A stretch of 64,000 bases of DNA from the NCBI GenBank assembly GCA_964019335.1, contig OZ025758.1:145183-209182 (forward strand). The letters are read 5' to 3'. Numbering within the stretch: position 1 is the stretch's first letter; every line of letters begins with the position of its first letter. The stretch is from Diplonema japonicum. Taxonomy: Eukaryota > Protista > Euglenozoa: Diplonemea. The translations under genes and the position numbers were made by a program. Under the pieces are notes generated by a model that saw only the letters and a program-made list of their open reading frames with translations, searched no databases and was not told the DNA's origin. Shown piece by piece: positions 6,001 through 56,308 of this stretch.

Positions 6001-9000
6001 TGCACTCCAGCTTCACCCCCCACTTGGAGCACGGAACTGCTCCCGACTGCGCGGGAGGGTTCGTCGTTGTGCTCCCACCACCACCACCGTTGTTCTGGAT
6101 CTGAACCTGTTGAGCGATGGCAGCCCCGAACCTCCCAGCAGGGTTGCAGAAGTCGTTGAAAACCTCGTCAAGCATGTCGTCCAGCGGCACGTTCACGAAG
6201 TGGTCGTCGTGGTCGTCCGAGGTGATCGGCTTCAGGGTCTCCTCCGCCTCGATGTCGGCCTGGGTGTGCTGCCTTCCCTTTCGCACCACCACACCGAAGG
6301 TCACAACCCCTTCCGCGTCCAGCTTCCTTCGGATGGGCGGAATCTCGGTGCTCTTCTGCGGCTCCAAGGGGTTCATCTGCCCGTCCGTGATGATGACGAG
6401 GACGTGCGCGCGGTGCGAGGGAGACCCGTGGAAGATGTCGACCGCGTCCTCCAAAGCTGCCGCCATGTAGGTGAGGGAGCTCATGTGGTTCGTCTCGTGC
6501 CAGTCCAGGTCGTTCTCCAACTCGGACAGGTCGCCCGTGAGCTGGCCGTTGGAGCAGGTGCGGCCCCCCGAGAGGCGCGGCATCGGGCACTGCTTCCGGT
6601 ACTTTCGCCCGTCGCATCCGTCGGCCCCGTTCCTGCACACCCAGTACTCGTTCTCGATGGAGAACTGCACGAAGGCCAGACGGAAGGTTCCCCCCGTCAC
6701 CTTCGAGTTCACCCCGACCGTGTTGTCCTCCCCGGTCAGGGGAAGCGTTCGCATCCAGTCCCGCAGCATCTCCAGCATCCCGTAGTAGCCGTTCGGGTGC
6801 GACCCGAAGCGCGCGTTCATCGACCCGCTCCCGTCCAGCACGAACGCGACGTCGAGGTCTGGGCAGCTCGAGGTCTGCACGTCCTTGCACTTCGGTGCGG
6901 GCGGCGTCACAGACGGGTCCCAGTAGCACTTCTTGTCGGCCGCGCAGTCGCAGTTGTTCGTGTGGTCGGAGCAGCGCGCCGGGTAGCAGTACGGTCCCTT
7001 GTTGTCGCTCCCCGGTCGGCACTCCGGGTCGCTCGTGCAGGCCCCCTGGTCGATCGTCCCCATCGTCGTCGGGTTCGGTCCCAGCCCGGGGTACTTCGTG
7101 TTGTGCTTCGTGGTGCACACGGTCGGTTGGCACGAGGCCGGCGTCGTCCCGGAGCTCCAGTGGCACCTCGGGTCGTGGTCGCACTTCACCTCGTCGTCCC
7201 CGTACTGCGGGCAGTAGTCGGGGACGCACTCGTTCTTCGTCGCGTCCCAGTGGCACAGCCCCGTCTGCCTCCCGCAGTCCGGCTGGTTCAGAGGCTGGCA
7301 GCGGTCCTGCGAGCAGACGCTGCTCGCGGCGTTCCACGAGCAGCTGTCGCAAGCCTTGCAGTCTGCCTGCGTCCTCGCCACCGTGCACTTCTTCTCCACG
7401 CACATCACCCCCGTCCACTCACAGTCGCTGCTCACCGCGCAGCTCCCTGGGGTCGGGTACGGGCACCGCGTGTCCCTGCACACCGAGTTCTCGCAGTCCC
7501 AGGCGCAGTTCGGGTCGCTCTTGCACGCCGCCGCGTCCGTCGTCGCCGTGCACGTCGCGACCGGCTTGCACACCGGCGGGTCCACCGCCGTGTCCCACTG
7601 GCAGTCTGCGTTCGGCGCCTTCAAACACTTCTCCCGCACGAAGATCGCTCCGCAGGGCTTCGGGTCGCACTTGGTCCCGTCCCACTTGCACAGGAGGTCC
7701 GGGTCGTTCACGCAGGCCTGCTGGTCCGTGTACTCGCACACCTTCCTCACGCACACGTTGTCCGGGGTCTTCCAGTTGCACGTGGGGTCTGCATCGCAGC
7801 AGCTCTTGTCGCAGCACTTCGCGCAGTGGGTCTCCGAGCAGGTCCCTCGGATCGCCGACTTCACCGACGACCCGCAGATGATGGTCGCGCGCTGGAGCTT
7901 GCACTTCTCACAGTCGTACATCCCCTTGTACTGCTGCGGGATCCCCTGGCAGTTCAGCTTCGGGCAGCCGGTCCCCGACGAGCAGCTCGACAGACGCGGG
8001 GTCTGCCACTCGCACACAGGGTCGGCGTTGCACTCGTCCTTGAAACCCCAGGTCGCGCACTGGAAGTGCGTCGCGGTCACCGGAGACACCAGCACCTTTC
8101 CGAACTTCGAGGTCGGGTCGCAGAAGGGTTCCAACACCTCCCCCGGGATCTCGTCCAGCATCAGGTTCATGAAGTGGTCGTCACGCGGCGTGCTCACCAG
8201 CGGCTTCAGCTTCGCCTCCGCGTTGTCGTCCTGGAAGGTGTGGTAGCTGAACCTCCTCATGATGATCCCGAAGACCACAACGTCCTCGTCCCGAAGCTTC
8301 TGCTGCGCGTCGTCCAGAATCCTCGGGTAGCTGGGCTTCCAGCGCGAGTCGCACCCCCTCGGGCACTGCCCGCAGGACGTCCCGGCGCTGCAGGCGTCGC
8401 CGTCGTAGTCCGTCAAACCCCCGTCCGCGATGATGATCACCACGTGCTTCCTGTGCGGCGGGCTCTGCGAGGGGAGGAAGGTGTGGTCCGCCACGTCCAT
8501 GAGGGCGTCGTGGATGTAGGTCCACTGCGACTGGTAGTTCGCCTCGTGCCAGTCGATGTCTCCCATCAGCTCGTTGATGTCTCCGGAAAGGAGACCGTCC
8601 GTGCACTGCCCGACCGCGCAGTTCGTGGGGTGGTCCTCGCTCGGCTTCGCCTCCGCCTTCGAGAACTGGATGAAGGTGAGACGGAAGCCGCCTCCCTTCG
8701 CGCTCGAGCTCGCCCCGACCGTGTGGTCCTCCCCGGTCAGGGGAAGCGTCCTCACCCAGTCCCTCAGGGTCTCCATCAGCCCGTAGAAGCCGTGCGGGTG
8801 GTTCCCGAAGGACCTCGACATCGACCCGGACCCGTCCAGCACGAAGGCCACGTCCAGATCCGGGCAGGTCGAGAAGGTCGTCTTCGAGCAGTGGCCGTTC
8901 GCCCCCGTCTTGTCCACCACCCACGTGCAGGCAGGGTCCTGCACGCAGTCGCACTTCTTCCCGCTGTGCTTGTCGCACCCGGTCAGCACGCACACGTCCG

Positions 9001-11233
9001 GCTGCTGCCACGCGCACTTCGTGTTCCCCGCGCACGAACCCTGCGAGGTCAGCGCCCCGCACTCCGTCGGCAGGCAGATCGACGGGCTCGACGTCACGTC
9101 CCAGTGGCACGCCCTGTCTTGGTCGCACCGCAGCTCTCCCAAATGCTTCTGGCACCGGCCCTCCTCGCACTTCGACAGCGGGTCGTTCCACACGCAGAAC
9201 GGGTCGTTCTCGCACTGCTGCATCGTCACGTGCTGGCACTTCTCCTGCGTGCAGTAGTCGACGAGTGTTGAAGGAGGCCCCGCCGGAGCCGGCGTCGTCA
9301 GCGGCACCCACTTGCACCCGGACTCCTGCAAGCACGTCCCCTCCTTCGTGTGCAGGCAAGCCTTCGGGTTGCACGCGGGCGCCCGCATCACGTCGAACTC
9401 GCACACGTTCAGGAAGCAGTAGTCCGGGTTCCCGGCGGGAGGGCTGCACGGCGCGGGCATCTCCACCGCCACCGCCACGCACGCCTGCTCGTTCGTGTGC
9501 GTCCTGCAAGGGTTCTCCACGCAGGTCGACGGGGTCGCCCACATCACGTTCCACAAACACTTCGAGTCGCTCCTGCAGGACGACGCGTCCGTGTGGCCCG
9601 CGCACCCGGCAGGCTCCCTCCTGCAGTCCGACCCGTCCCACGCGCAACCGGCGCGGGCCAAACACGTCGTCTGCGTGCACAGCACGTAGCACTCCGACAC
9701 CTGACACAGCGGCGTCTTCGAGGTGTCCCAGAAGCAGGCGCTGTCCGCCATGCACGACCCCTCGTCGCCGTTCCCGGAGCACAGGGGCTTGCTCGACGGG
9801 TCGAGGCACCGTCCGGACTCCCACGCGCACTTCGGCGAGGCGGCGAGGCACCTGCACTTCTCCGTCACGTCGCTGCACACAAGCGTCTGGCACTTCTTGT
9901 CCCCGGCGATCTGGGAGTTCCAGTGGCACGGTCCGCCCGTCGTCCTGTCGGCGTTGCAGTCCTGCTCCTCCACGTGCGTCACCGCGCAGTAGTTGTCCAC
10001 GCACTCCGCGGGGCGCTTCCTCGTGTCCCAGTCGCATCCCAGGTCCGCCTCGCAGGTCGGCTCCGTCGGGTACGAGTGGCACCCCCAGTCCACGCACACC
10101 CCGTCCTTCTGAGAGATGTCCCACTTGCACGAGCCGATCGGGAGCTGCGCCTCGCACGCCCCCTGGTTCGTCGCCCCGCCGCACCCGGAGGTCAAGACCT
10201 GCGACCCGTACACGTCGTCCTTGTTCACGCACAGGTCGCCGACACCCCCCCACTCGCACACGTACCCTTCGATGTTCGTGTGGGCGTTCGGGTAGTCGTT
10301 CCACTCGCCGTTCCCGTAGTAGTGTCCGTAGTCCTCACCGGTCGTGTCGCACGTCCCGGGGCAGGTCTTCGAGTACTCGTTCGGCTCTCCGGACTCCCAG
10401 TTCGTGAAGGCTCCCGCTGCAGGTTGGAAGCCCGCGCCCTTCCCGGTCCCGATCAGGGTCCCCTGCCCGCAGTCTGGTCCGGAGCACGGCGTCTTCGTCG
10501 CGGGGAGCGGGTACCCCAGGTCGCAGGCCGAACGCTGGGCCCCCGTCGCCGCCACGTTGTAAGGCGGGCACCCCTCGGGACCCGTCAGCCAGCGCCACTC
10601 CCCCTCCTGCGCCAGATCCCCGCTTCCGATCCACCCCTCGCCGTGCAGCTTCGCCGAGGCCACATCCTGCTCGTCCTGCGAAGTGATGGTGATGAGGTAC
10701 CCCACGAGCCCCAGCACATCCTTCGAGGTGTCCGCGCACTCCGCCTGCGCCTCGTCCCAGTGGCAGTTCCCTGCTGTGTTGCAGTTCACGCTGTTCTTCG
10801 GGTAGTACTCGTAGAAGTTTCCGGTGTGTGTGGAGTACATGGCGTGCCCGAAGTTGTAGGTCAAGCGGCGGGAGGTTCCAGCTCCCGACGTCGACTTGAA
10901 GGTCACAGACGAGATCGCCTGCGCGTACTCGTCGATCGTCGCATCCCCTGACATCTGCAGGATCCCCGTTGTCCTGTCGAAGGTGGGGGTGATCCCGAGC
11001 CCCGCACACGCTCCACAGGTCAGCGTGTCCGCCGCAGGGTCGAACCCATCCTCCACGTCCACCACGGACCCGCTGATCTTCGTCCCACAGCTGCACGCAC
11101 CAGACGTGAAGGTGATGTCCGCACACTTCACGTCAGGGAACGGCGTCATGGGCACTCCCTGGTTGTACGCTGCCCCGAAGCACGAGGCTGCTAGCGACAG
11201 CAGCACCGCAGGGCGGTGCAATGCATGCGCCAT
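1..11233 (-). CDS. Giant secreted/surface protein (>=3744 aa, 3'-partial): signal peptide, C-type lectin module, Cys-rich repeats, five vWA domains, EGF-like repeats
   Basis: ATG at 11233 (MAHALHRPAVLLSLAASCFG...). The frame was open wherever I translated it (5' end, ~9.25-9.35 kb, 3' edge) and runs off the window, so it is absent from the ORF track. Lectin motifs GYLITITS..EQ and GWIGSGD..QEGEWRW lie at ~10230-10860. Five MIDAS motifs (LDGSGSM x4, FDGSSSM) lie at ~8830, 6830, 4910, 3270 and 1650, with downstream TDG/ADG motifs. DEC..C..Q.C.DP..DW.C.C repeats lie at 1-950. Confidence 0.9.
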   Translation of the reverse strand, partial: MAHALHRPAVLLSLAASCFGAAYNQGVPMTPFPDVKCADITFTSGACSCGTKISGSVVDVEDGFDPAADTLTCGACAGLGITPTFDRTTGILQMSGDATIDEYAQAISSVTFKSTSGAGTSRRLTYNFGHAMYSTHTGNFYEYYPKNSVNCNTAGNCHWDEAQAECADTSKDVLGLVGYLITITSQDEQDVASAKLHGEGWIGSGDLAQEGEWRWLTGPEGCPPYNVAATGAQRSACDLGYPLPATKTPCSGPDCGQGTLIGTGKGAGFQPAAGAFTNWESGEPNEYSKTCPGTCDTTGEDYGHYYGNGEWNDYPNAHTNIEGYVCEWGGVGDLCVNKDDVYGSQVLTSGCGGATNQGACEAQLPIGSCKWDISQKDGVCVDWGCHSYPTEPTCEADLGCDWDTRKRPAECVDNYCAVTHVEEQDCNADRTTGGPCHWNSQIAGDKKCQTLVCSDVTEKCRCLAASPKCAWESGRCLDPSSKPLCSGNGDEGSCMADSACFWDTSKTPLCQVSECYVLCTQTTCLARAGCAWDGSDCRREPAGCAGHTDASSCRSDSKCLWNVMWATPSTCVENPCRTHTNEQACVAVAVEMPAPCSPPAGNPDYCFLNVCEFDVMRAPACNPKACLHTKEGTCLQESGCKWVPLTTPAPAGPPSTLVDYCTQEKCQHVTMQQCENDPFCVWNDPLSKCEEGRCQKHLGELRCDQDRACHWDVTSSPSICLPTECGALTSQGSCAGNTKCAWQQPDVCVLTGCDKHSGKKCDCVQDPACTWVVDKTGANGHCSKTTFSTCPDLDVAFVLDGSGSMSRSFGNHPHGFYGLMETLRDWVRTLPLTGEDHTVGASSSAKGGGFRLTFIQFSKAEAKPSEDHPTNCAVGQCTDGLLSGDINELMGDIDWHEANYQSQWTYIHDALMDVADHTFLPSQSPPHRKHVVIIIADGGLTDYDGDACSAGTSCGQCPRGCDSRWKPSYPRILDDAQQKLRDEDVVVFGIIMRRFSYHTFQDDNAEAKLKPLVSTPRDDHFMNLMLDEIPGEVLEPFCDPTSKFGKVLVSPVTATHFQCATWGFKDECNADPVCEWQTPRLSSCSSGTGCPKLNCQGIPQQYKGMYDCEKCKLQRATIICGSSVKSAIRGTCSETHCAKCCDKSCCDADPTCNWKTPDNVCVRKVCEYTDQQACVNDPDLLCKWDGTKCDPKPCGAIFVREKCLKAPNADCQWDTAVDPPVCKPVATCTATTDAAACKSDPNCAWDCENSVCRDTRCPYPTPGSCAVSSDCEWTGVMCVEKKCTVARTQADCKACDSCSWNAASSVCSQDRCQPLNQPDCGRQTGLCHWDATKNECVPDYCPQYGDDEVKCDHDPRCHWSSGTTPASCQPTVCTTKHNTKYPGLGPNPTTMGTIDQGACTSDPECRPGSDNKGPYCYPARCSDHTNNCDCAADKKCYWDPSVTPPAPKCKDVQTSSCPDLDVAFVLDGSGSMNARFGSHPNGYYGMLEMLRDWMRTLPLTGEDNTVGVNSKVTGGTFRLAFVQFSIENEYWVCRNGADGCDGRKYRKQCPMPRLSGGRTCSNGQLTGDLSELENDLDWHETNHMSSLTYMAAALEDAVDIFHGSPSHRAHVLVIITDGQMNPLEPQKSTEIPPIRRKLDAEGVVTFGVVVRKGRQHTQADIEAEETLKPITSDDHDDHFVNVPLDDMLDEVFNDFCNPAGRFGAAIAQQVQIQNNGGGGGSTTTNPPAQSGAVPCSKWGVKLECRSDQACDWKTPAPSSCPGNNGCRNLNCLELPSAQRAAGMSCSNCLLSGGAVSCSFGTNNPVGSGYCGATKCEEHCSQGPCEQDTANDCFWDVDRCQRKVCQYPDKNRCESDPDSMCMWDTSKVPATCVPKTCLHFSQGTCNADKSCQWDPASQTCKDKTPDCGTIYDKLDCLNHVSGSCDWDCDADKCVKKVCGETSQGACQGSPAGCSWDAGSGACQKTRCTTAFTENACISDEACVWSGSSCAESKCYKHATEPTCDRDTDCHWDPTGCAGCKEKYCFKTFKDSGSCNADPKGQCTWDTANNKCVNKLCDTYNNPAMGPNRMCDCQADPRCVVDRSNPSNPVCRDQTFTQCPDLDVVVAFDGSSSMKKRFGTHPNGFDGLMEALRDWVTALPLTGERAGVPSTDRNGKVRVAFNQWDKGVRLAECPSCACVPAPGTTGDGIPTNSVMNRQGMNRPADNCGKLTGDRGQLHADIDWHESVGRRSQTLVKEAEEFAGEVFKESPSYRKKILLIFTDGRIQDKGSLGPAGAVLRAEGVQTFGIVLSRGNPTNKDQQNLEILKEIVTPPEDSHALMMQIDEAHQVLDDFCNPNSVFGALITSGSSTNGGGGGGSGSAVHSPACNTIQRTADCEARKTCEWSGLAAACTDHPCFRHCSETDCVADTTNKCKFNSGTLQCEKSACTDNTNAPDCRNSGCTWDPSKNPPCYDGPCQATDRMTCNNLGPQCTWDASIRPTAMCVKTPCFYPSKAPCAADANCEWDEVCADPSDQKCVPKRCSQPGHQTQAGCVADSWCVWTSSLTCELGLCAKYPTEKCCDHNDACHWSVTTFPPVCTEKYCPRTYPSQGTKTQCDADSKCMWDSGKLLCVEEDCSKLAKCPCRAHPDCYWDAQHNKCTDQKFGGCPTMDVVMLLDGSGSMDAWFGNHPHGFYGLIEILRDWVRTLPLTGEPAGTNTGPGPASGGLRLGFVQFSGQNPWRRRRGRSEAIQTPGGVGTGGHLSGDLREINRDLDWHERNYMGEGTMIEKGLVMVGDMFDASHQHAVRPRVLIIFTDGKIYDPNKLAPARRVLDQEDVQTFGIVLRKQQQHTKADWDAEATLKPITSDPHDDHFQNLMLDEVPGSVLGDICDPNGKWGHLVAALAKKTGGGGGTQTQGGKHQPCRNYNDPHTCSVDPGCEWHPAGFECKDSPCMAHCDKTSCVKDLTNLCTWNGQECWKDTKCAYTDRTSCLSSPDLCTWDKTGKCVSPPCTPNKNQADCNADQNGCSWVPNPNGGGNSICVVSPCSSAFQSTCLADPNCKWDYPLCGSTTNLQCMQKGCDTIGSRSTCTADVHCVWDPALSSCKDRQCAQFRTERCCDKDPLCKWDPAASPALCAVKKCPAIKTQKKCDTQSDCMWDATANPAHCTDLDCSKFPNMCPCNQHSKCYWKPGAGTTGAGGCVTIQFGECPTLDIVLVLDGSGSMAARFGNHPHGFDALMEMMRDWIRTLPLNGEPATVGINSKQGNGGVRVGMVQFSGRNRRRSEARKTPWGKGTAGRLSGVLPELEDDIDWHEDNYMGEGTMIEMGLSMAADIFHESPVDGRQRVLFIFTDGKIYDPNSLSGARAELDREGVQTFGIVVRKAVQHTKADWDAEATLKPITSDPHDDHFKNVMIDEVPDLMRGICDPNGPWGHLIVKNPPQPSSGYHLPCPDYKTQGTCKKDPGCSWSDVGAVCLNSPCLMHCSDSACRADPNNKCTWVNGSICTNAPDPKCDCEFNTGDPVYDEQMCRSDPKCQWDAASGACQHDQCAPGNVGALTCGAKNQKCVDPNPAPCKDDWHCDCVPPAVRVGGGSPGKFAAQCELDECVVQTCPTCARTTCSDANQDCNDPNPTTTSLNDWTCTCRDPYKGMAVANAAVCQLDECVVQTCPTCAKTTCSDKGQTCHDPDTTTLSDWTCTCPPPSTQSMLTAAVPSCDVDECKLHKSTCENADQTCLDPNPAKLGDWMCKCKPPTNGSATAQVAWCQLDECVV

Positions 11234-11368
11234 CTTCTCACACGAGTTTTTGCTTTTTGTTTGAACTCCCTTATATCCGGGTGTTCAGTAGTAGTAGCTT
11301 TTGTTGTCTCTCGATGGATATATAGTTTTTTGTGTGTATGGGGGGGGGGGGGGGGGGAGAACCTTTGG

Positions 11369-11636
11369 TGTGTTTGAGTTGTATTGGATAAGCACGTGGG
11401 GAATAAAAAAAAAGCAGAAAAAAGAAAGAAGTGTAGGGATGAAATGAAATGGTTTCAAAAGAGCTTTGGTGTAAAATGAAACAAAATGTTTGAATCTCAT
11501 TTGACATTGGGAGTCAGAGAGAGTGCATGTTGTTTCAATTTTATCAATCGGGGGAAGGGGGTGAGGAGGGCGACCGCAAAGGACAGCACTTGTTCAAAAA
11601 AAAAAAAAAGATAAAAATGAACGAGTGTCATAAAAT
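11369..11636. repeat. ~270-bp direct repeat, copy 1 (flanks ankyrin gene)
   Basis: Near-identical to 14268-14547, from tgtgtttgagttgtattggataagcacgtg to gataaaaatgaacgagtgtcataaaat, with a few indels. Confidence 0.95.
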
Positions 11637-11832
11637 TTACGTGACGAGCAATACTGATGTGGTGATTCTATGCGATGCAAGTAGGGAAAGGTGGCACACA
11701 CAAGGAAATGAAATGAAAACTATTCTTTTAAGGTATGCGTTTTTGCGCTCACTGGCCGCGCTGTGAAAAGAAACAGGTGGCTGAAATGTTGTAAGTGGGA
11801 ACAAACAGAAGAGACGACAACACACTCGCTCT

Positions 11833-14211
11833 TCACTGCCTTTCATCGTGGTCTTCGTACTTCCTTTTCACACCCCTCCTTTCGGGAGAAGCCACCTTGC
11901 GCCTTGCCAGAAGAAGCGCCCGAATGGACTCAATGTTACTCCCCTCAGCCGCGTAGAACAGTGGGGTGAACCCCTCCCCGTCCCTCACACAAGGGTCCTG
12001 CTCGTAGGAATCCAGTAGCAGCTGCATCGCCTCAGTACAGTTTCCAGCAGCCATGTGCAAAGGAGTAAGCCCCCCATTGTCCCGCACACAAGGGTCCTGC
12101 TTGTATTCATCGATGAGGAACTTCACCACCTTCACGCTCTTACTTGCTGCATAGTGCAACGGTGTCTCGCCATAGTTGTTCATCATGCCAGCATCCAGTT
12201 TGCACTCATCGAGCAGGTACATCATCACCTCCATGCACCCCTCACTTGCTGCTACGTGCATGGTGGCTCTTCCGATGTCTGATTCGATGTAAGGGTCAAG
12301 CTTGCACTCTTTGACAAAGAACTTCACCACATCAACTTTGTTCTCCATTGCCGCCCTGTGCAAGGGTGTCATGCCTGTCCCATCCTTCATCCCAGGGTCA
12401 AGTTTGCAGACTTCAGTGAGATACCTGACCACCTCCAGCTGTCCACCCTCTGCTGCGATGTCCATGGGTGCTATGCCGCCAGTGTTCCTTGAGCCAGGGT
12501 TTTGCTTGTGAACTTCGACAAGGTGCCTCACTGCCTCCAGCTGACCATCTCGTGCTGCATACATAATCGGTGTGAATACCTTGTCCTCGACAGTCAGCTC
12601 CTGTTTGTAAACATTGACGAGACAGTCCATTGCTGCTAGCTCGCCTGTTTGCGCAGCAAAGTGGAGAGGTGTGGTGCCCTTCTGGTCCCTTGCCCCAGGG
12701 TCCAACTTGTACTCGTCGATGAGAAACCTCATTGCCTCCACGTGACCATTAATTGCTGCCACATGAAGGTAGGAGGTTCTTTCATCATCCACAAGGCTTG
12801 GGTCAAGCTTGCACTCTTCGATGAAATACCTCATCACATCAACATGGTTCTTCATTACCGCCAAGTACAAGCCTCTCCTGTTCTTCATCCCACCAGGGTC
12901 AACCTTGCAGACTTCAGTGAGATACCTGACCACATGCAAGTGGTTGTGACACGCAGCAAGGTCTATGGGTGCCATGCCTCTATTGTTTCTTAAATTGGGA
13001 TCTGCCTTTAAGTCACTCACGAGCCACTCCAGTGATTGAAGACTCCCCTCTACCGCTGCGTAGTGGACGAGAGTTGCACCGCAGGGATCCACAATTGTAG
13101 GGTCTTGCTTGCACTCTTCGATGAAATACCTCATCACATCAACGTTGTTCCTCATTGCCGCCCTGTGCAAGGGTGTCGTGCCTGTCCCATCCTTCATCCC
13201 AGGGTCAACCTTGCAGACTTCAGTGAGATACCTGACCACATGCAAGTGGTTGTGACACGCAGCAAGGTCTATGGGTGCCATGCCTCTATTGTTTGGCAAA
13301 TAAGGATCCAACTTAAAGTCACTCACGAGCCACTCCAATGATTGAAGCCTTCCCGCTTCCGCTGCGTAGTGGACGAGAGTTGCACCGCAGGGTTCCACAA
13401 ATGTAGGGTCTTGCTTGCACTCCTCAATGAGGTACTTCATCGCCTCGAACTGACCTTTTGTGAGAAGGACTGCAACAAGGCCATCGGCAGTCGGGGTCGC
13501 AGGGTCTATCTTGCACACCTCAATGAGGTACCTCAAGGCCTCCACGTGACCACCCAGTGCCGCCCTGTGAATGTGAGCATAGCCCTCATCGTCCTCACCG
13601 CTCGGGTCAAGCTTGCACTCTTCGATGAAATACCTCACCACATCAACTTTGTTCTCCATTGCCGCCCTGTGCAAGGGTGTCATGCCTGTCCCATCCTTCA
13701 TCCCAGGGTCAAGTTTGCAGACTTCGCTGAGATACCTGACCACCTCCAGCTGTCCCCCCTCTGCTGCGATGTCCATGGGTGCGAAGCCTCTTGTGGTCCT
13801 TGAGCCAGGGTTTTGCTTGTGAACTTCGACAAGGTGCCTCACTGCCTCCAGCTGACCATCTCGTGCTGCATACATAATCGGTGTGAATACCTTGTCCTCG
13901 ACAGTCAGCTCCTGCTTGTAAACATTGACGAGACAGTCTATTGCCGCAAGCTTGCCTGTTTGCGCAGCAAAGTGGAGAGGTGTGGTGCCATTCGTGTCCC
14001 TTGCCCCAGGGTCCAGCTTGTACTCGTCGATGAGGAGCCTCATGGCGGCGACCTGACCGTGCCTTGCTGCAGTGTGCAAAGCTGTCACGCCACGCGGACC
14101 AGTCACACTTCTGTGCACCCCGTACTTCTGGATGATTGCCTTCATGTGTTGCAGGTCGCCTCTCGCAGCAGCTGACTTCACCTCGCCAAACACTTCATTG
14201 TCCTCAACCAT
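11833..14211 (-). CDS. Ankyrin-repeat protein (792 aa, ~22 repeats, internal block duplications); probable retrogene
   Basis: Repeated G.TPLH.AA..G..E.V.YL motifs; intronless; basic C-terminal RRGVKRK (possible NLS). Confidence 0.95.
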   Translation of the reverse strand: MVEDNEVFGEVKSAAARGDLQHMKAIIQKYGVHRSVTGPRGVTALHTAARHGQVAAMRLLIDEYKLDPGARDTNGTTPLHFAAQTGKLAAIDCLVNVYKQELTVEDKVFTPIMYAARDGQLEAVRHLVEVHKQNPGSRTTRGFAPMDIAAEGGQLEVVRYLSEVCKLDPGMKDGTGMTPLHRAAMENKVDVVRYFIEECKLDPSGEDDEGYAHIHRAALGGHVEALRYLIEVCKIDPATPTADGLVAVLLTKGQFEAMKYLIEECKQDPTFVEPCGATLVHYAAEAGRLQSLEWLVSDFKLDPYLPNNRGMAPIDLAACHNHLHVVRYLTEVCKVDPGMKDGTGTTPLHRAAMRNNVDVMRYFIEECKQDPTIVDPCGATLVHYAAVEGSLQSLEWLVSDLKADPNLRNNRGMAPIDLAACHNHLHVVRYLTEVCKVDPGGMKNRRGLYLAVMKNHVDVMRYFIEECKLDPSLVDDERTSYLHVAAINGHVEAMRFLIDEYKLDPGARDQKGTTPLHFAAQTGELAAMDCLVNVYKQELTVEDKVFTPIMYAARDGQLEAVRHLVEVHKQNPGSRNTGGIAPMDIAAEGGQLEVVRYLTEVCKLDPGMKDGTGMTPLHRAAMENKVDVVKFFVKECKLDPYIESDIGRATMHVAASEGCMEVMMYLLDECKLDAGMMNNYGETPLHYAASKSVKVVKFLIDEYKQDPCVRDNGGLTPLHMAAGNCTEAMQLLLDSYEQDPCVRDGEGFTPLFYAAEGSNIESIRALLLARRKVASPERRGVKRKYEDHDERQ

Positions 14212-14225
14212 GTTATTTCTTTTGT

Positions 14226-14246
14226 CAATAAAGCACAGAATTCTGT
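14226..14246 (-). other. Relic spliced-leader 3' end upstream of ankyrin ATG
   Basis: Minus strand ACAGAATTCTGTGCTTTATTG versus SL ACAGTTTCTGTACTTTATTG: the last 15 nt match 14/15. It ends 14 nt before the ATG. Confidence 0.8.
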
Positions 14247-14267
14247 TAAAAAGGGAGTCTTTTAGGT

Positions 14268-14547
14268 TGTGTTTGAGTTGTATTGGATAAGCACGTGAGT
14301 AGGAAAAAAGAAAGAAGTGTAGAGATGAAATGAAATGGTTTCAAAAGAGCTTTGGTGTAAAATGAAACAAAATGTTTGAATCTCATTGACATTGGGAGTC
14401 AGAGAGAGTGCATGTTGTTTCAATTTTATCAATCAGGGGAAGGGGGGGGGGGGGGGTGAGGAAGGAAGTGTCCTGACAACAATTCTGCGACCGCAAAGGA
14501 CAGCACTTGTTCAAAAAAAAGATAAAAATGAACGAGTGTCATAAAAT
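14268..14547. repeat. ~270-bp direct repeat, copy 2
   Basis: Matches 11369-11636. Confidence 0.95.
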
Positions 14548-14799
14548 ATATTCAAGAAAAAAAGAGAAAAAGAGAGGGAGAAAAGAGAAGAATGAAAGAA
14601 AAGATATCAAAACAAACGTCGCGGCAGCTGTAGGTGGGAAGAAAAGAATGTGTTATAAAAAAAACCCCCCCCACAAAACCCTCTGGTGTGTCACAGCATT
14701 CAGGGATGGAATCCTGAGCAAAGACTGACGGCTTGCTTTGGTTTTTTTTTTCTTTCTTTCTTTCTTTCTTTCTTTTTTTTTTTTTTTTAAACCCCCTTT

Positions 14800-15861
14800 T
14801 CAGCCAATCTTCTCACCGCCCCAGTAGTTAGCCTCGGGCTTCAAGCACTGTGCGTACCACCTGCTCTGCTTGTAGCACCCAGCTCCGGGGGTGCAACAGC
14901 TCGGTGTCTTCAAACAGTTTCCCCACAGGGGGACAACGAAGGAACAACTGCCAGGGGACGGGGGAGGGGTGGCAGGAGGAGGAGGCGGTGTGGAAGGGAC
15001 CGGTGTGGGGACAGGGGTAGGGGGCGAGGGTGTCGGGACGGGCGAGGGTGTGGGAACAGGTGTGGGGAGGGGCGTCGGAGGGGCTGTCGGAGGGGTGGGT
15101 GTCAAGTTCGCTGGGGTGCAGTGCGCAAACCACCTGTTCACCTGGTGGCACTTGGCTCCAGGTGCACAGCAGTGTGTTTCGGTGGTGCATGTTGCCCAGA
15201 GAGGGATCACACGAGAGCATGAGGCAGGAGGGGGGACAGGGACAGGGACAGGTGGAACAGGGACAGGTGGGCTGTTACCACCACCACCACCACTACCACT
15301 ACCAAAGTCCAAGTCGATGGCGTTGTAGAAGGTGTTGGCAGTGTCACCCACATCCCAGACAGCGAGGACGACGTGGTAGCCCGCCTTGGAGGGGAGGGTG
15401 CAGGAGTGCGTCGTCAGGATCTGCGGGTTCATCATGTTCCCCATCACGGAGCAGAAGGGGGTCCCTTCGAAGCTGCTCCTCGCAAGCGGTGCCTCCTGGT
15501 CCCATCCGTCCCTCGTGATGTAGTACCGCCAGTCCAGAGTCGCGTGGTTCGCCTGGAACCACCAAGTGAAGTCTGTCCTCCCAGCTGACGCTGCTGTCTT
15601 CGCCCACCTCGTCGAAGACTGCTCGTTCAGAGGGGTCCACCGGGAGCTCCCCGCTGCAGCCAGCGTCCCGTCAGGAGGCCCGCTCACAGGGTACCTGTCC
15701 GGACCCTCCACGCTCTGGGGCTCGTACTGCACCGCACCGCAGTTCTGGTTCTCCCCCCCGGTCCTGCACATGTAGTTCCTCGATGGAGGGACCTTCACGT
15801 ACCCGTGGCCCTCCACACCTGACGCTGCAAGCAGCACGGGGAGCGCAAGGCGTTGTAACAT
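14800..15861 (-). CDS. Secreted AA10 lytic polysaccharide monooxygenase (GbpA/CBP21-like) with Pro/Thr linkers and two CBM1-like modules
   Basis: Signal peptide followed by His1 (HGYV); YEPQSVEG; second brace His in WWFQANH; WDVGDTANTFYNAID. Two C-terminal modules, PLW..C...CC.PG..C.....W(F/Y)A.C. Confidence 0.92.
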   Translation of the reverse strand: MLQRLALPVLLAASGVEGHGYVKVPPSRNYMCRTGGENQNCGAVQYEPQSVEGPDRYPVSGPPDGTLAAAGSSRWTPLNEQSSTRWAKTAASAGRTDFTWWFQANHATLDWRYYITRDGWDQEAPLARSSFEGTPFCSVMGNMMNPQILTTHSCTLPSKAGYHVVLAVWDVGDTANTFYNAIDLDFGSGSGGGGGNSPPVPVPPVPVPVPPPASCSRVIPLWATCTTETHCCAPGAKCHQVNRWFAHCTPANLTPTPPTAPPTPLPTPVPTPSPVPTPSPPTPVPTPVPSTPPPPPATPPPSPGSCSFVVPLWGNCLKTPSCCTPGAGCYKQSRWYAQCLKPEANYWGGEKIG

Positions 15862-38792: not shown

Positions 38793-40433
38793 TTGAAGAT
38801 GACGCGGTGGTTCTTCTTTTTTATTATCCCCTCCTTTTTTTTCTTTGTGTATTAGACCTGTTTATGTGTGTTTCAAGCAGGAGCAGTAACGAGAGGAAAG
38901 AAAAAGAGAAGAAGAATGACTTTGGTTGCTTCATAAACCGCCTGGCGTACGAGCAACTTCTTAACCGTGCTAGCGGATGTTGCACCCTTCTGTGCTGAAG
39001 GATGCATGGCTGCGGGAAGAAAAAAGAAGCTGCGCCTTACTGACTGGGATCTTACACGTGTCTGTCACCATTCCGAGGTTGCATCTCTGGTGCTGAGCTG
39101 TGCTGAGAACATCAAATAAAGAGCTGTTCGAGTAGACGAGAATAACTAACTGTCGCAGAGTGAAAGTCATGCGATGAATTGATGATTTTTTTAAAGATCA
39201 TCATGAGAAAGTTTGTCTTTCAAGAAAGGCTTCAAACCGAGAAATTCAGAATGGCCGAGGCCACGTGGTGAACTGCATCAATGTGACCCATGTGCGTTCA
39301 GACATTTATCTTCCGGTGATCTTTGTTTTACAGTTTTTTTTTTTTTTTTTTTTTTTTTTTTGTTTTTAATTAAATTCCGAAGAGGAAAAGGGGACCTGTG
39401 GAGGAATCTTCAGGGTACCTTGTGGAGATATCAGACGAGAGCCCGCAGTTGAGGGCCGCGTAAGGGACGCATTGGTCCATGCGGTATCCGAAGGCCACGT
39501 GGAAGCTGCCAGGGGCCGTCATGTGGGGCATGATGACCCAGCTGAAGGTACCTCATATGCGAAAGTGGATGTCGGAGAAGGCCAAGGCTCTGCAGGCGGG
39601 AACAGCGACCTGGAGCTCGAAGGCTGCGATAAGTCCACGATGACGAGTCGTAGAAACTATCTCGTTGTTCCTTTGGAAGTCCCGCTTTTCGGAGCGGGTG
39701 GATCTGTCTGGGTTTTGTTAGTCACGTCTCTGAAAAGCATGCTATTTTTACGCATTCAACTCTTAAATTAAAACATCTGAGGGGGTTCTCGGAATGTAGC
39801 GAGAAACGCCATTTCGAGGTCACGTGCACGATACTTGAGCAGTCCCGGTATGCGCATTCTAGCTAAGGAAAAAAAAAAAAAAGAAAATAATAGGGTTGTT
39901 AAGAAAATGTTGGTTTCTTCAACGGTTCGATTCAAAAAGAAAGGTGCTAGACCTTTATAAAAATTACGTTATCACTTAGTGATCCATGTCCACGGTCATC
40001 TTTAGTAAAAGGCGAAAGATGAGTTCGTTATGAACAAGAATCGTGAGATGCCTTCTCAAGACAAAAACAAACCTCCTTTTACAAAGTATGGTACAACGAA
40101 AAGGGGTACGAAAGCTTCCAGGTTAATGGGAAAAACCAAAGCAATGGAACCCGAACCCACGTACATCGGGGTAACTGAGCAAAATAAAAAGCGAAAATTA
40201 AAAATGAGTGAAGAAAAGAAAAGAATACAAAAGAATAAAAGAGACTCCTCAAGAGGAGCCTCCCACGTACCAGGAATTAAGCAGAGGTTGCTTCCATGGC
40301 CCGTATCAGTCTATCGCCGGAAAGAATAATGAAAATAACAGAACGAAGCGAGAAAGGAAAAGAGAAAAGACGGTAGAGGTCCTAGAGGTCTGTGAAACCT
40401 TGCATAGCCTATCGCCCTCGTAGCACGCCTATA

Positions 40434-41503: not shown

Positions 41504-41542
41504 CAATAAAGTACAGAAACTGTAGCTTTAGAATCATTGGTC
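41504..41542 (-). other. Full-length 39-nt spliced-leader sequence (isolated genomic copy)
   Basis: GACCAATGATTCTAAAGCTACAGTTTCTGTACTTTATTG. The 3' half CAGTTTCTGTACTTTATTG is the conserved kinetoplastid/diplonemid SL end, and the length is exactly 39 nt. Confidence 0.9.
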
Positions 41543-42006
41543 TTTACTTTTTTCTTTTTCTTTTTTTTTTTTTTTTTAAAGCCCGACCACTCTCGTAACC
41601 TCTCGTAACAGTCTGAGAAGGACTCTCTTCGCGCCTCATCCACACCTGGGAACACCACATCCAACGATCTTTGGCTGGGTTGCAGGTATTTTAAAAAGGA
41701 CTAGTTTTTGTGATATAATGATGGAAAAAAAAAAAAAGAGTAAGAAGAAAGAAATGTGGGGGTGAGAAAATGTTTGTTGATGTTGAGCATTTATGAAACT
41801 AACTTGGGGTACTACGCAGAGATTTAGGAAACCTTGGGAACCGGATCAGAAACTCTTTCCTCCTTAAAGATAGACCTTGAACATTGCTCAACTTAACTAA
41901 GGGGGTGGATTTTGAGCATTTCTTTGGTCCCCCCCCCCCCTTTTTTTCCCACAAGGAAGGGATCTACAACCACCCCTCGCAATTCCGTTCGCTTCCGCTC
42001 CTGCAG

Positions 42007-56210: not shown

Positions 56211-56308
56211 TTTTTTTTTTTGTTTTTTTTGTTTTTCCCCTTACCCCACCCCCCTCCTTTTTTTTTTTTATAAACAAAGGTTCACGAAGAAAGCAATAAG
56301 GCGCAGAA

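Follow-up and report, generated by a model that had tools for sequence, protein, structure and literature searches.

The stretch of DNA analysed here, called the window, comprises 64,000 nucleotides of the Diplonema japonicum contig OZ025758.1 (positions 145,183 to 209,182 of the forward strand). Its minus strand carries an ankyrin-repeat gene with an intact open reading frame (ORF) of 792 aa, and a piece of the spliced leader (SL) is encoded in the DNA just upstream of the start codon. The SL is normally joined to an mRNA only after transcription. The contig of the window is labelled C111 below; C75, C96, C87, C34 and C81 are other contigs of the same genome, which was available as 62.5 Mb in 132 contigs. 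The features at the 5′ end of the gene, including its 5′ untranslated region (UTR), and the SL copy of the window that served as a reference are as follows.

11833..14211, minus strand: intact 792-aa ankyrin-repeat ORF with ATG start, stop codon included; recognised by Pfam.
14212..14225, minus strand: the rest of the 5′ UTR, ACAAAAGAAATAAC, an expanded form of the GCAAC seen in the C96 and C87/C34 copies.
14226..14240, minus strand: core SL relic TTCTGTGCTTTATTG, matching the SL 3′ end at 14/15 positions and ending at the last base of the SL exon.
14241..14246, minus strand: ACAGAA, by local alignment a probable further part of the relic; the SL has ACAGT here, and the C96 copies have ACAA, with no G.
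14247..14258, minus strand: ACTCCCTTTTTA, a short run of C and T that separates the relic from the conserved upstream AG; its counterpart at C96 is a longer (C)n(T)n tract.
14259..14260, minus strand: AG within CCTAAAAG, the predicted main trans-splice acceptor; kept in five of five relic-lineage copies and used as acceptor in the C75 mRNA.
41504..41544, minus strand: reference SL exon, then GT and SL-RNA intron-like sequence; the intron is homologous to that of other SL RNA genes.

The Pfam family Ank_2 matches the ORF in 11 stretches with 419.5 bits (E = 2.3e-128), and Ank_4 matches it with 334 bits, both above the gathering score. The ratio of nonsynonymous to synonymous divergence (dN/dS) between the ORF and its paralogs is 0.36–0.54 across the first 90 codons, and contigs of an RNA-like public run, X5, match the coding region without differences. 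The window gene is probably functional.

Read along the minus strand, the 5′ end consists of CCCTTTTTAACAG (14255–14243), AA, the relic TTCTGTGCTTTATTG (14240–14226), ACAAAAGAAATAAC (14225–14212), and the ATG (14211–14209). The relic is in the sense orientation, 14 nt from the start codon. A preliminary description of this DNA, made from the letters alone, had reported an intact 792-aa ORF, with a 14/15 match to the SL 3′ end located 14 nt upstream of its ATG, and a further SL copy at 41504. The sequence readout and the ORF list agree with the former. The latter, 41518–41504 on the minus strand, reads TTCTGTACTTTATTG and is preceded by the remainder of the 38–39-nt SL; the whole copy (41544–41504) reads ...CTACAGTTTCTGTACTTTATTG, with GT and intron-like sequence next. 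If one gap is allowed in a local alignment to the SL, the relic match reaches ACAG, with 18 identities in 21 columns. The first 19 nt of the SL are absent from the relic, rather than decayed, and about 20 of the 39 nt are present. In the whole window, there are three matches to the SL 3′ end at ≤2 mismatches, against 0.13 expected from shuffles of the window.

The base that follows the relic is A in the window, and GC follows in the C96 copies, so that neither GT nor SL intron stands there. The lack of a following GT and intron fits a spliced mRNA, and not SL RNA or the DNA of an SL gene. The site does not have the makeup of an SL RNA gene, since only the 3′ 15–21 nt of the SL are present and no intron comes after them, and Rfam at its gathering threshold found no match in the ankyrin locus. 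Nor is the relic clipped at the AG within the SL: ACA(G) is retained upstream of the 16-mer, and no second SL or tandem relic was found there. An assembly artefact at the junction, a concern of the preliminary description, is not the cause. A 180-nt contig of an independent public run covers 14174–14353 with zero differences, a twin of the locus lies 45 kb away at 99.95% identity, and two diverged paralogs on C96 have the same variant. The relic is a genuine DNA-encoded SL remnant.

The relic TTCTGTGCTTTATTG differs from the SL by an A>G change. This variant has five exact occurrences in the genome, two on C111, two on C96, and one on C81, and the four on C111 and C96 sit directly 5′ of ankyrin paralogs. 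The ankyrin paralogs on C96 (C96a and C96b) are 88% identical to the window gene, and their sequence up to the start codon is (C)n(T)n..AACAATTCTGTGCTTTATTG|GCAAC-ATG. The corresponding sequence is ...CCTCCACAAGCAGCACAG|GCAAC-ATG in six other paralogs, which are located in a tandem array on C87 and on C34. At the junction, C96a and C96b have TTTATTG|GCAACATG, whereas the six C87/C34 copies have GCACAG|GCAACATG with a pyrimidine-rich stretch before the AG. The ungapped identity of C96 to C34 is 88–93% in the 60 nt past the junction, as compared with 27–32% in the 60 nt before it. The best local SL score in the 45 nt before the junction is 13–14 in the relic copies and 5–7 in the C87/C34 copies. 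The last base of the SL exon is thus located at the position of the putative AG acceptor of the parent type, as predicted for a reverse-transcribed trans-spliced mRNA. SL RNA, the DNA of SL genes, and the heads of long interspersed nuclear elements (LINEs) continue with GT, and so do not predict this junction. The preliminary description had taken the genomic SL as a mark of RNA-mediated origin, and it had foreseen a parent ankyrin paralog with an acceptor at the 3′ end of the relic. The C87/C34 copies are paralogs of this kind, and the junction, together with the variant in the C96 paralogs, provides support for the RNA-mediated origin of the ankyrin lineage.

The lack of introns, which the preliminary description counted as a sign of a retrogene, carries no weight, because the parent-type C87/C34 genes are also intronless single ORFs, of 558–1130 aa. 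A younger ankyrin retrocopy with a full SL was sought in the genome and not found. A variant SL RNA gene with the A>G change was considered as the source of the relic and rejected, since the sole other instance, on C81, is an SL fused to non-intron sequence. That site (L061; C81:9715–9729, minus strand) is a near-complete SL with the same A>G, and it may reflect a recurrent mutation or a former SL variant with G.

Where is the window gene trans-spliced? Four public runs were compared over 11300–14900. One of them, X5, is RNA-like, with a longest record of 7.4 kb and no depth on R2, the repeat copy downstream of the gene. A contig of X5 ends ...GTTTCTGTACTTTATTG|ACTAGACAAGAAG, which is the SL joined to the 5′ UTR of the C75 copy of the ankyrin gene. 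Since this SL junction is absent from genomic DNA, it is an RNA trans-splice junction. It lies at CCCAAAAG|ACT and is the only RNA junction recovered; for the window copy, no SL junction was found among the matches listed for the four runs. The AG of CCCAAAAG is kept in all five relic-lineage copies (14260–14259 in the window), 17 nt upstream of the relic. Because this AAAAG is conserved and is used in the C75 sister mRNA, 14259|14258 is the predicted main acceptor of the window copy; a minor acceptor may possibly lie at 14243|14242. The preliminary description had the CAG within the SL being reused as the new acceptor. Conservation does not support such reuse, as the C96 copies read AACAATTC at this position, with the G absent. 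The relic itself is most likely without function, a neutral passenger in the 5′ UTR.

The features that flank the gene bear on its later history.

14800..15861, minus strand: upstream neighbour, a gene for an AA10 lytic polysaccharide monooxygenase (LPMO) with cysteine-rich C-terminal modules; also found 5′ of the C75 copy.
14268..14547, minus strand: R1, upstream copy of a direct repeat (R) of ~270 nt, between the LPMO and ankyrin genes.
11637..11832, minus strand: 3′ UTR and downstream spacer; ~100 nt are homologous to parent-type 3′ UTRs once a LINE tail is excised, and there is no A-run.
11716..11764, minus strand: young insertion of the 3′ tail (45 nt) of a T-tailed LINE, together with TTTT, into a T-tract of the 3′ UTR; in the C111 copies only.
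11369..11636, minus strand: R2, downstream repeat copy, flanked by the ankyrin 3′ UTR and by the minus-strand gene that follows (its ATG is at 11233).

The LPMO gene, R, and the gene start are common to the window and the C75 locus, at 86–96% identity. Of R, the C96 copies have only the proximal part, in a diverged form, and their upstream genes differ. A second copy of the locus (L002; C111 ~111,000–114,700) contains R1, the relic, the ankyrin gene, and R2 in 3.7 kb at 99.95% identity. It is located 45 kb upstream of the window locus on the same contig, in a larger segmental duplication that includes the LPMO gene. Since the neighbours and R are shared with C75, an R-like sequence is shared with C96, and a twin lies 45 kb away, the window gene is, by these sequence comparisons, a DNA-level descendant of an older retrocopy and not a primary retrocopy. 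The core idea of the preliminary description, a functional retrogene, holds with the correction that the window gene descends from the retrocopy and is not the primary copy.

In a tree of the first 270 nt, the copies form three clades, one of C96a and C96b, one of the window and C75, and one of the six C87/C34 copies. This tree is unrooted, and a single split with 89/84 support separates C87/C34 from the rest. The synonymous divergence (dS) between the window and C96 is about 0.2, and the few changes in the relic fit such an age, but the lack of the first 19 nt of the SL does not. At the relic, C75 reads AAAAGACT-AG-ACAAG, and the window reads AAAAGACT-CCCTTTTTAACAGAATTCTGTGCTTTATTG-ACAAAAG. 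Since both C96 and the window carry the relic, it was lost in C75. Insertion of the relic exactly after the CTAG of C75 was considered and rejected: the RNA contig shows C75 spliced 5 nt further upstream, at AAAAG, and C96 provides a third copy for comparison. The C75 ankyrin gene (L001:3741–4250, ~6086–6215) has a 58-nt deletion that causes a frameshift, and ~1.8 kb of other sequence interrupts it. It is still transcribed and trans-spliced, according to the RNA-like contig. Just upstream of C96a, there is a 736-aa ORF with a reverse-transcriptase-like YIDD motif (L075; C96:148400–152400, minus strand).

The repeat R has only five copies in the genome, four on C111 and one on C75. A 32-nt block that is present in R1 and the C75 copy is missing from R2. 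When R1, R2, and the C75 copy were compared with one another, R2 was the outgroup to the other two, with 13 informative sites against 3 and 4; the identity of R2 is 92%, compared with 96% between R1 and the C75 copy, and R1 and R2 have diverged by 7.7%. By this comparison of sequences, the duplication of R predates the split of C111 from C75 and far postdates the split from C96. Because R2 is the outgroup and the C96 flank is barely alignable, R1 and R2 are not taken as the target-site duplication (TSD) of the original retroposition. When R was folded as RNA, it gave a modest z = −2.8, around a hairpin near 14400.

The SL 3′ 15-mer, at ≤1 mismatch, has 350 matches in the genome, compared with 7 for the reversed control. 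There are 33 exact SL ends whose next base is not G and 27 that are followed by G and then a base other than T, so that no GT donor is present; the controls gave 0. The preliminary description had proposed to look for an excess of SL relics upstream of genes over background; SL sequences joined to non-intron DNA are strongly enriched across the genome. The census consists of these pattern counts and of 53 inspected sites (33/33 of the former class and 20/27 of the latter). Most of the inspected sites have a full 38–39-nt SL joined to a short UTR and an ATG, and these fall into several multicopy families. Some are SL RNA gene variants, and several carry, behind a complete SL, a further TTTCTGTACTTTATTG, a relic of the SL part directly downstream of the internal CAG. 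The genome is rich in elements with a 5′ end of a T-tract and TTCTGTACTTTATTG, or of a full SL, and in every LINE head and SL gene seen, TTATTG is followed by GT. A host mRNA that was copied together with its SL is found at L029 (C91:5469–7070), which has a full SL and the first 570 nt of the mRNA of an NAD-dependent epimerase (RmlD-like). This copy is 99.6% identical to its parent gene (L048, on C39), which has no SL upstream; the copy breaks off within the coding sequence, where it is joined to a subtelomeric repeat found at >40 contig ends. L029 and the SL-headed copies show that trans-spliced RNAs get copied into this genome.

Several other SL sequences were seen. In the SL RNA genes L003, L005, L008, L019 and L024 (on C8, C12, C20, C58 and C76), another TTTCTGTACTTTATTG stands between the complete SL and the GT donor. 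The exon is thus extended by a unit that corresponds to the SL from just behind its internal CAG. Trans-splicing of an SL RNA and its return to the genome could have produced such an exon; alternatively, the unit could stem from a 16-nt tandem slip. At L017 (C51:133898–133914, minus strand), ...GGGATCGAG runs directly into a perfect 16-nt relic, TTTCTGTACTTTATTG, and the rest of the SL is missing. An ORF of 306 aa that weakly matches a FYVE-like zinc finger lies 187 nt downstream, and the site may thus be another case of a relic at a host gene. At many contig ends, (CCCGCAAA)n repeats abut the SL directly (L021, L023, L024, L030, L035), and the family of L030 (≥1151 aa, with AlkB-like 2OG-Fe(II) oxygenase and OTU protease domains) begins with the SL at contig ends. 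In the window, TTCTGCGCCTTATTG at 56294–56308 (minus strand) has 3 differences from the SL 3′ end and a run of ~50 T before it. This layout matches the T-tract and SL-end heads of LINE families, and the site may be a decayed head or a chance match. A U5 snRNA gene (39941–40048, minus strand; Rfam, 81 bits) is located 1.5 kb from the reference SL of the window, and an A-run precedes that SL.

We consider it highly probable that the relic is a fossil SL from a reverse-transcribed mRNA of the ankyrin lineage, and we propose the following history. An ankyrin gene of the C87/C34 type would have been transcribed and trans-spliced at ...GCACAG|GCAACATG. The mature mRNA would then have been reverse-transcribed, most likely by one of the LINE reverse transcriptases that abound in this genome. 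Integration of the cDNA downstream of an R-like sequence with a C/T tract would have kept at least the last 20 of the 39 SL nt, fused to GCAAC-ATG. The missing 5′ part of the SL is absent rather than decayed, so either 5′ truncation of the cDNA or a later replacement must be assumed; probably the cDNA was 5′-truncated, or this part was replaced early. The new copy would have been trans-spliced from an AG in its new flank (CCAAAAG|), so that the relic became part of the 5′ UTR. Subsequent duplications at the DNA level would have given rise to the pair on C96 and to the copies on C75 and C111. The C75 copy would have lost the relic by a deletion of ~28–30 nt and would have become a frameshifted, still transcribed pseudogene, while a further duplication would have given the C111 copy its 99.95%-identical twin at a distance of 45 kb. 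On the branch to C111, an indel would have expanded the GCAAC of the 5′ UTR to ACAAAAGAAATAAC, and a young LINE tail would have landed in the 3′ UTR.

A number of observations weigh against this history. Only about 20 of the 39 SL nt are present. The relic of the window abuts ACAAAAG, not GCAAC, and the exact parental junction is visible only in C96. The use of GCACAG|G as acceptor in C87-type genes is deduced from the sequence, in which two other AGs lie 5 and 8 nt upstream. As there are no introns in the parental genes, intron loss is unusable as a test. The 3′ end has no remnant of a poly(A) or T tail and no short TSD; an A-run, a T-run and a short TSD were sought there in the window, C96 and C75 copies. 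Over the first 270 nt, the window is slightly nearer to the C87-type copies (about 90–91%) than to C96 (88.5%), so the monophyly of the relic lineage rests on the unrooted tree, the shared relic, and the shared flank. Gene conversion among the ankyrin paralogs is possible.

What other origins could the SL piece have? It could be the leftover of an SL-headed retrotransposon, or a fragment of an SL RNA gene or its cDNA, that landed at the DNA level and was then largely deleted, in which case the ankyrin gene was never copied from mRNA. The genome is, as described above, full of elements that start with a T-tract and TTCTGTACTTTATTG or with a full SL, the ankyrin relic is also preceded by a C/T tract, and an RT-like ORF is located upstream of C96a. 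However, the LINE heads and SL genes seen continue with GT, whereas in the ankyrin copies the SL piece is followed by GCAAC-ATG, the 5′ UTR of the parent. The break in homology to the C87-type copies falls exactly at the last base of the relic and at the parent-type AG, which insertion plus deletion could produce only by a double accident. Furthermore, the insertion of a retroelement would not account for an upstream region that, over its whole length, has no relation to that of the C87-type genes. We therefore regard this origin as very unlikely. An origin by chance, as an AT-rich 15-mer that happens to resemble the SL at 14/15 positions near a start codon, is extremely improbable. The reversed control does give ~7 matches per genome at ≤1 mismatch, so a few chance matches are expected over ~1000 windows. 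However, only 0.13 matches are expected per window even at ≤2 mismatches, and this one is on the correct strand, 14 nt from the ATG. Paralogs of 88% identity on a different contig have kept the same variant upstream, and the variant stops at the position of the parental AG.

The window copy could also be a fresh retrocopy whose insertion between the LPMO gene and the gene downstream created R1 and R2 as a giant TSD. The two repeats enclose the unit exactly, R1 ending at the C/T tract before the relic and R2 at a poly-C before unrelated sequence; each repeat is upstream of a minus-strand gene, and there is no second R copy after the C75 gene. Nevertheless, C75 has the LPMO gene, R, and the gene start in common with the window at the DNA level, R2 is the outgroup among the R copies, and the 7.7% divergence of R1 from R2 is far below the expectation for an event of the age of the relic (dS ~0.2). 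There is also no tail between the 3′ UTR and R2, and this genome has no empty site. The relative dating of the R copies thus disfavours a giant TSD, and we think a fresh retrocopy quite unlikely. A broader possibility, which we hold to be doubtful, is that retroposition of SL-tagged mRNA is a working route of host-gene duplication in diplonemids, with R1/R2 as a by-product of integration that duplicates intergenic signals for trans-splicing and polyadenylation. If this were true, the incoming and the downstream gene would each keep a processing cassette, and the retrogene would plug into the polycistronic unit. Our preferred interpretation remains that an ankyrin mRNA was retroposed with its SL and that the resulting copy was later duplicated as DNA.

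A relic SL is, to our knowledge, the only internal label that proves an mRNA stage of a gene, and it has been used in this way only in dinoflagellates and their relatives. The original description of dinoflagellate relic SLs, as a ‘recycling of processed cDNAs’, is reportedly that of Slamovits and Keeling (2008). Like the relic-SL retrogenes of dinoflagellates, the ankyrin lineage has a DNA-encoded SL remnant in the sense orientation, and the 5′ UTR of the parent follows directly on the 3′ end of the SL. The gene is likewise expressed and, as predicted here from the C75 sister, trans-spliced again from an upstream acceptor, and the remnant serves as a natural tag of RNA-mediated duplication. 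The typical dinoflagellate signature, a full SL and a relic right after the SL-internal CAG, occurs elsewhere in the D. japonicum genome. Unlike in dinoflagellates, the ankyrin relic is found in the Diplonemea (Euglenozoa) and comes from an unrelated 39-nt SL, it keeps ACA(G), there are no tandem relics, and the copy is several DNA-level duplications past the retroposition. Relic SLs and SL-tagged retrogenes are documented in dinoflagellates (PMC5585692, PMC6050394, PMC12014239).

The ankyrin relic also resembles the SL-headed retroelements of the same genome, which have the same SL, presumably depend on the same RT machinery, and start with a full or partial SL, often after T-tracts. However, those are multicopy mobile elements that inherit an SL head and GT, whereas the ankyrin family has a decayed relic of single origin and a parent type without a relic. 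In L029, as in the ankyrin lineage, a host mRNA and its SL were copied into DNA, and the parent gene has no SL. L029 is young, with a complete SL, 3′-truncated, and non-functional, whereas the ankyrin relic is old, 5′-truncated, and located before a complete, apparently functional gene.

In the Kinetoplastea, RT-mediated intron loss has been proposed from the precision of the loss, and no SL remnants were reported (PMC11613528). There, too, the cDNA of a host mRNA re-enters a euglenozoan genome; here, the SL is the footprint. The D. japonicum genome paper does not mention spliced leaders, retroelements, or transposons (PMC13598402). Genomic SL remnants are likewise unmentioned in the D. papillatum genome paper, the diplonemid intron paper, and the kinetoplastid intron-loss paper (PMC11613528). 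The searched literature contained no report of a relic SL or an SL-tagged retrogene for the Euglenozoa, in keeping with the preliminary description, which knew of none for diplonemids. Within the literature searched, the mechanism is thus new for diplonemids, although dinoflagellates are known to have it. In one way the claim is modest, because the mechanism was already known from other trans-splicing lineages. Its significance is that the relic stands before an intact, transcribed host gene family with a recognisable parent, which indicates that host cDNA enters a euglenozoan germ line and can yield working genes. Relic SLs also offer a means to count and date RNA-mediated duplications in diplonemids.

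The 3′ UTR of the window gene contains the LINE tail listed above (…CAGCGCGGCCAGTGAGCGCAAAAACGCATACCTTAAAAGAATAG). This tail has 160 copies in the genome, and the match is exact in all 100 of those listed. Elsewhere it closes LINE bodies, with T-runs next, and some copies are only about 50 nt long. It is absent at C75 and C96, and homology to the C87-type 3′ UTR was restored when it was excised in silico. Sequencing depth is ~100-fold higher at the tail in four of four runs, which its copy number explains. The patch of high depth, 37 nt long, had been considered as the hallmark of a LINE template switch; this was rejected, because the patch is a young, C111-specific insertion of a LINE tail into the T-tract.

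Pfam gave no match to the long ORFs downstream of R2. The minus-strand gene downstream, with its ATG at 11233, has a signal-peptide-like start (MAHALHRPAVLLSLAASCFG...), and its body yields long spurious ORFs on both strands.

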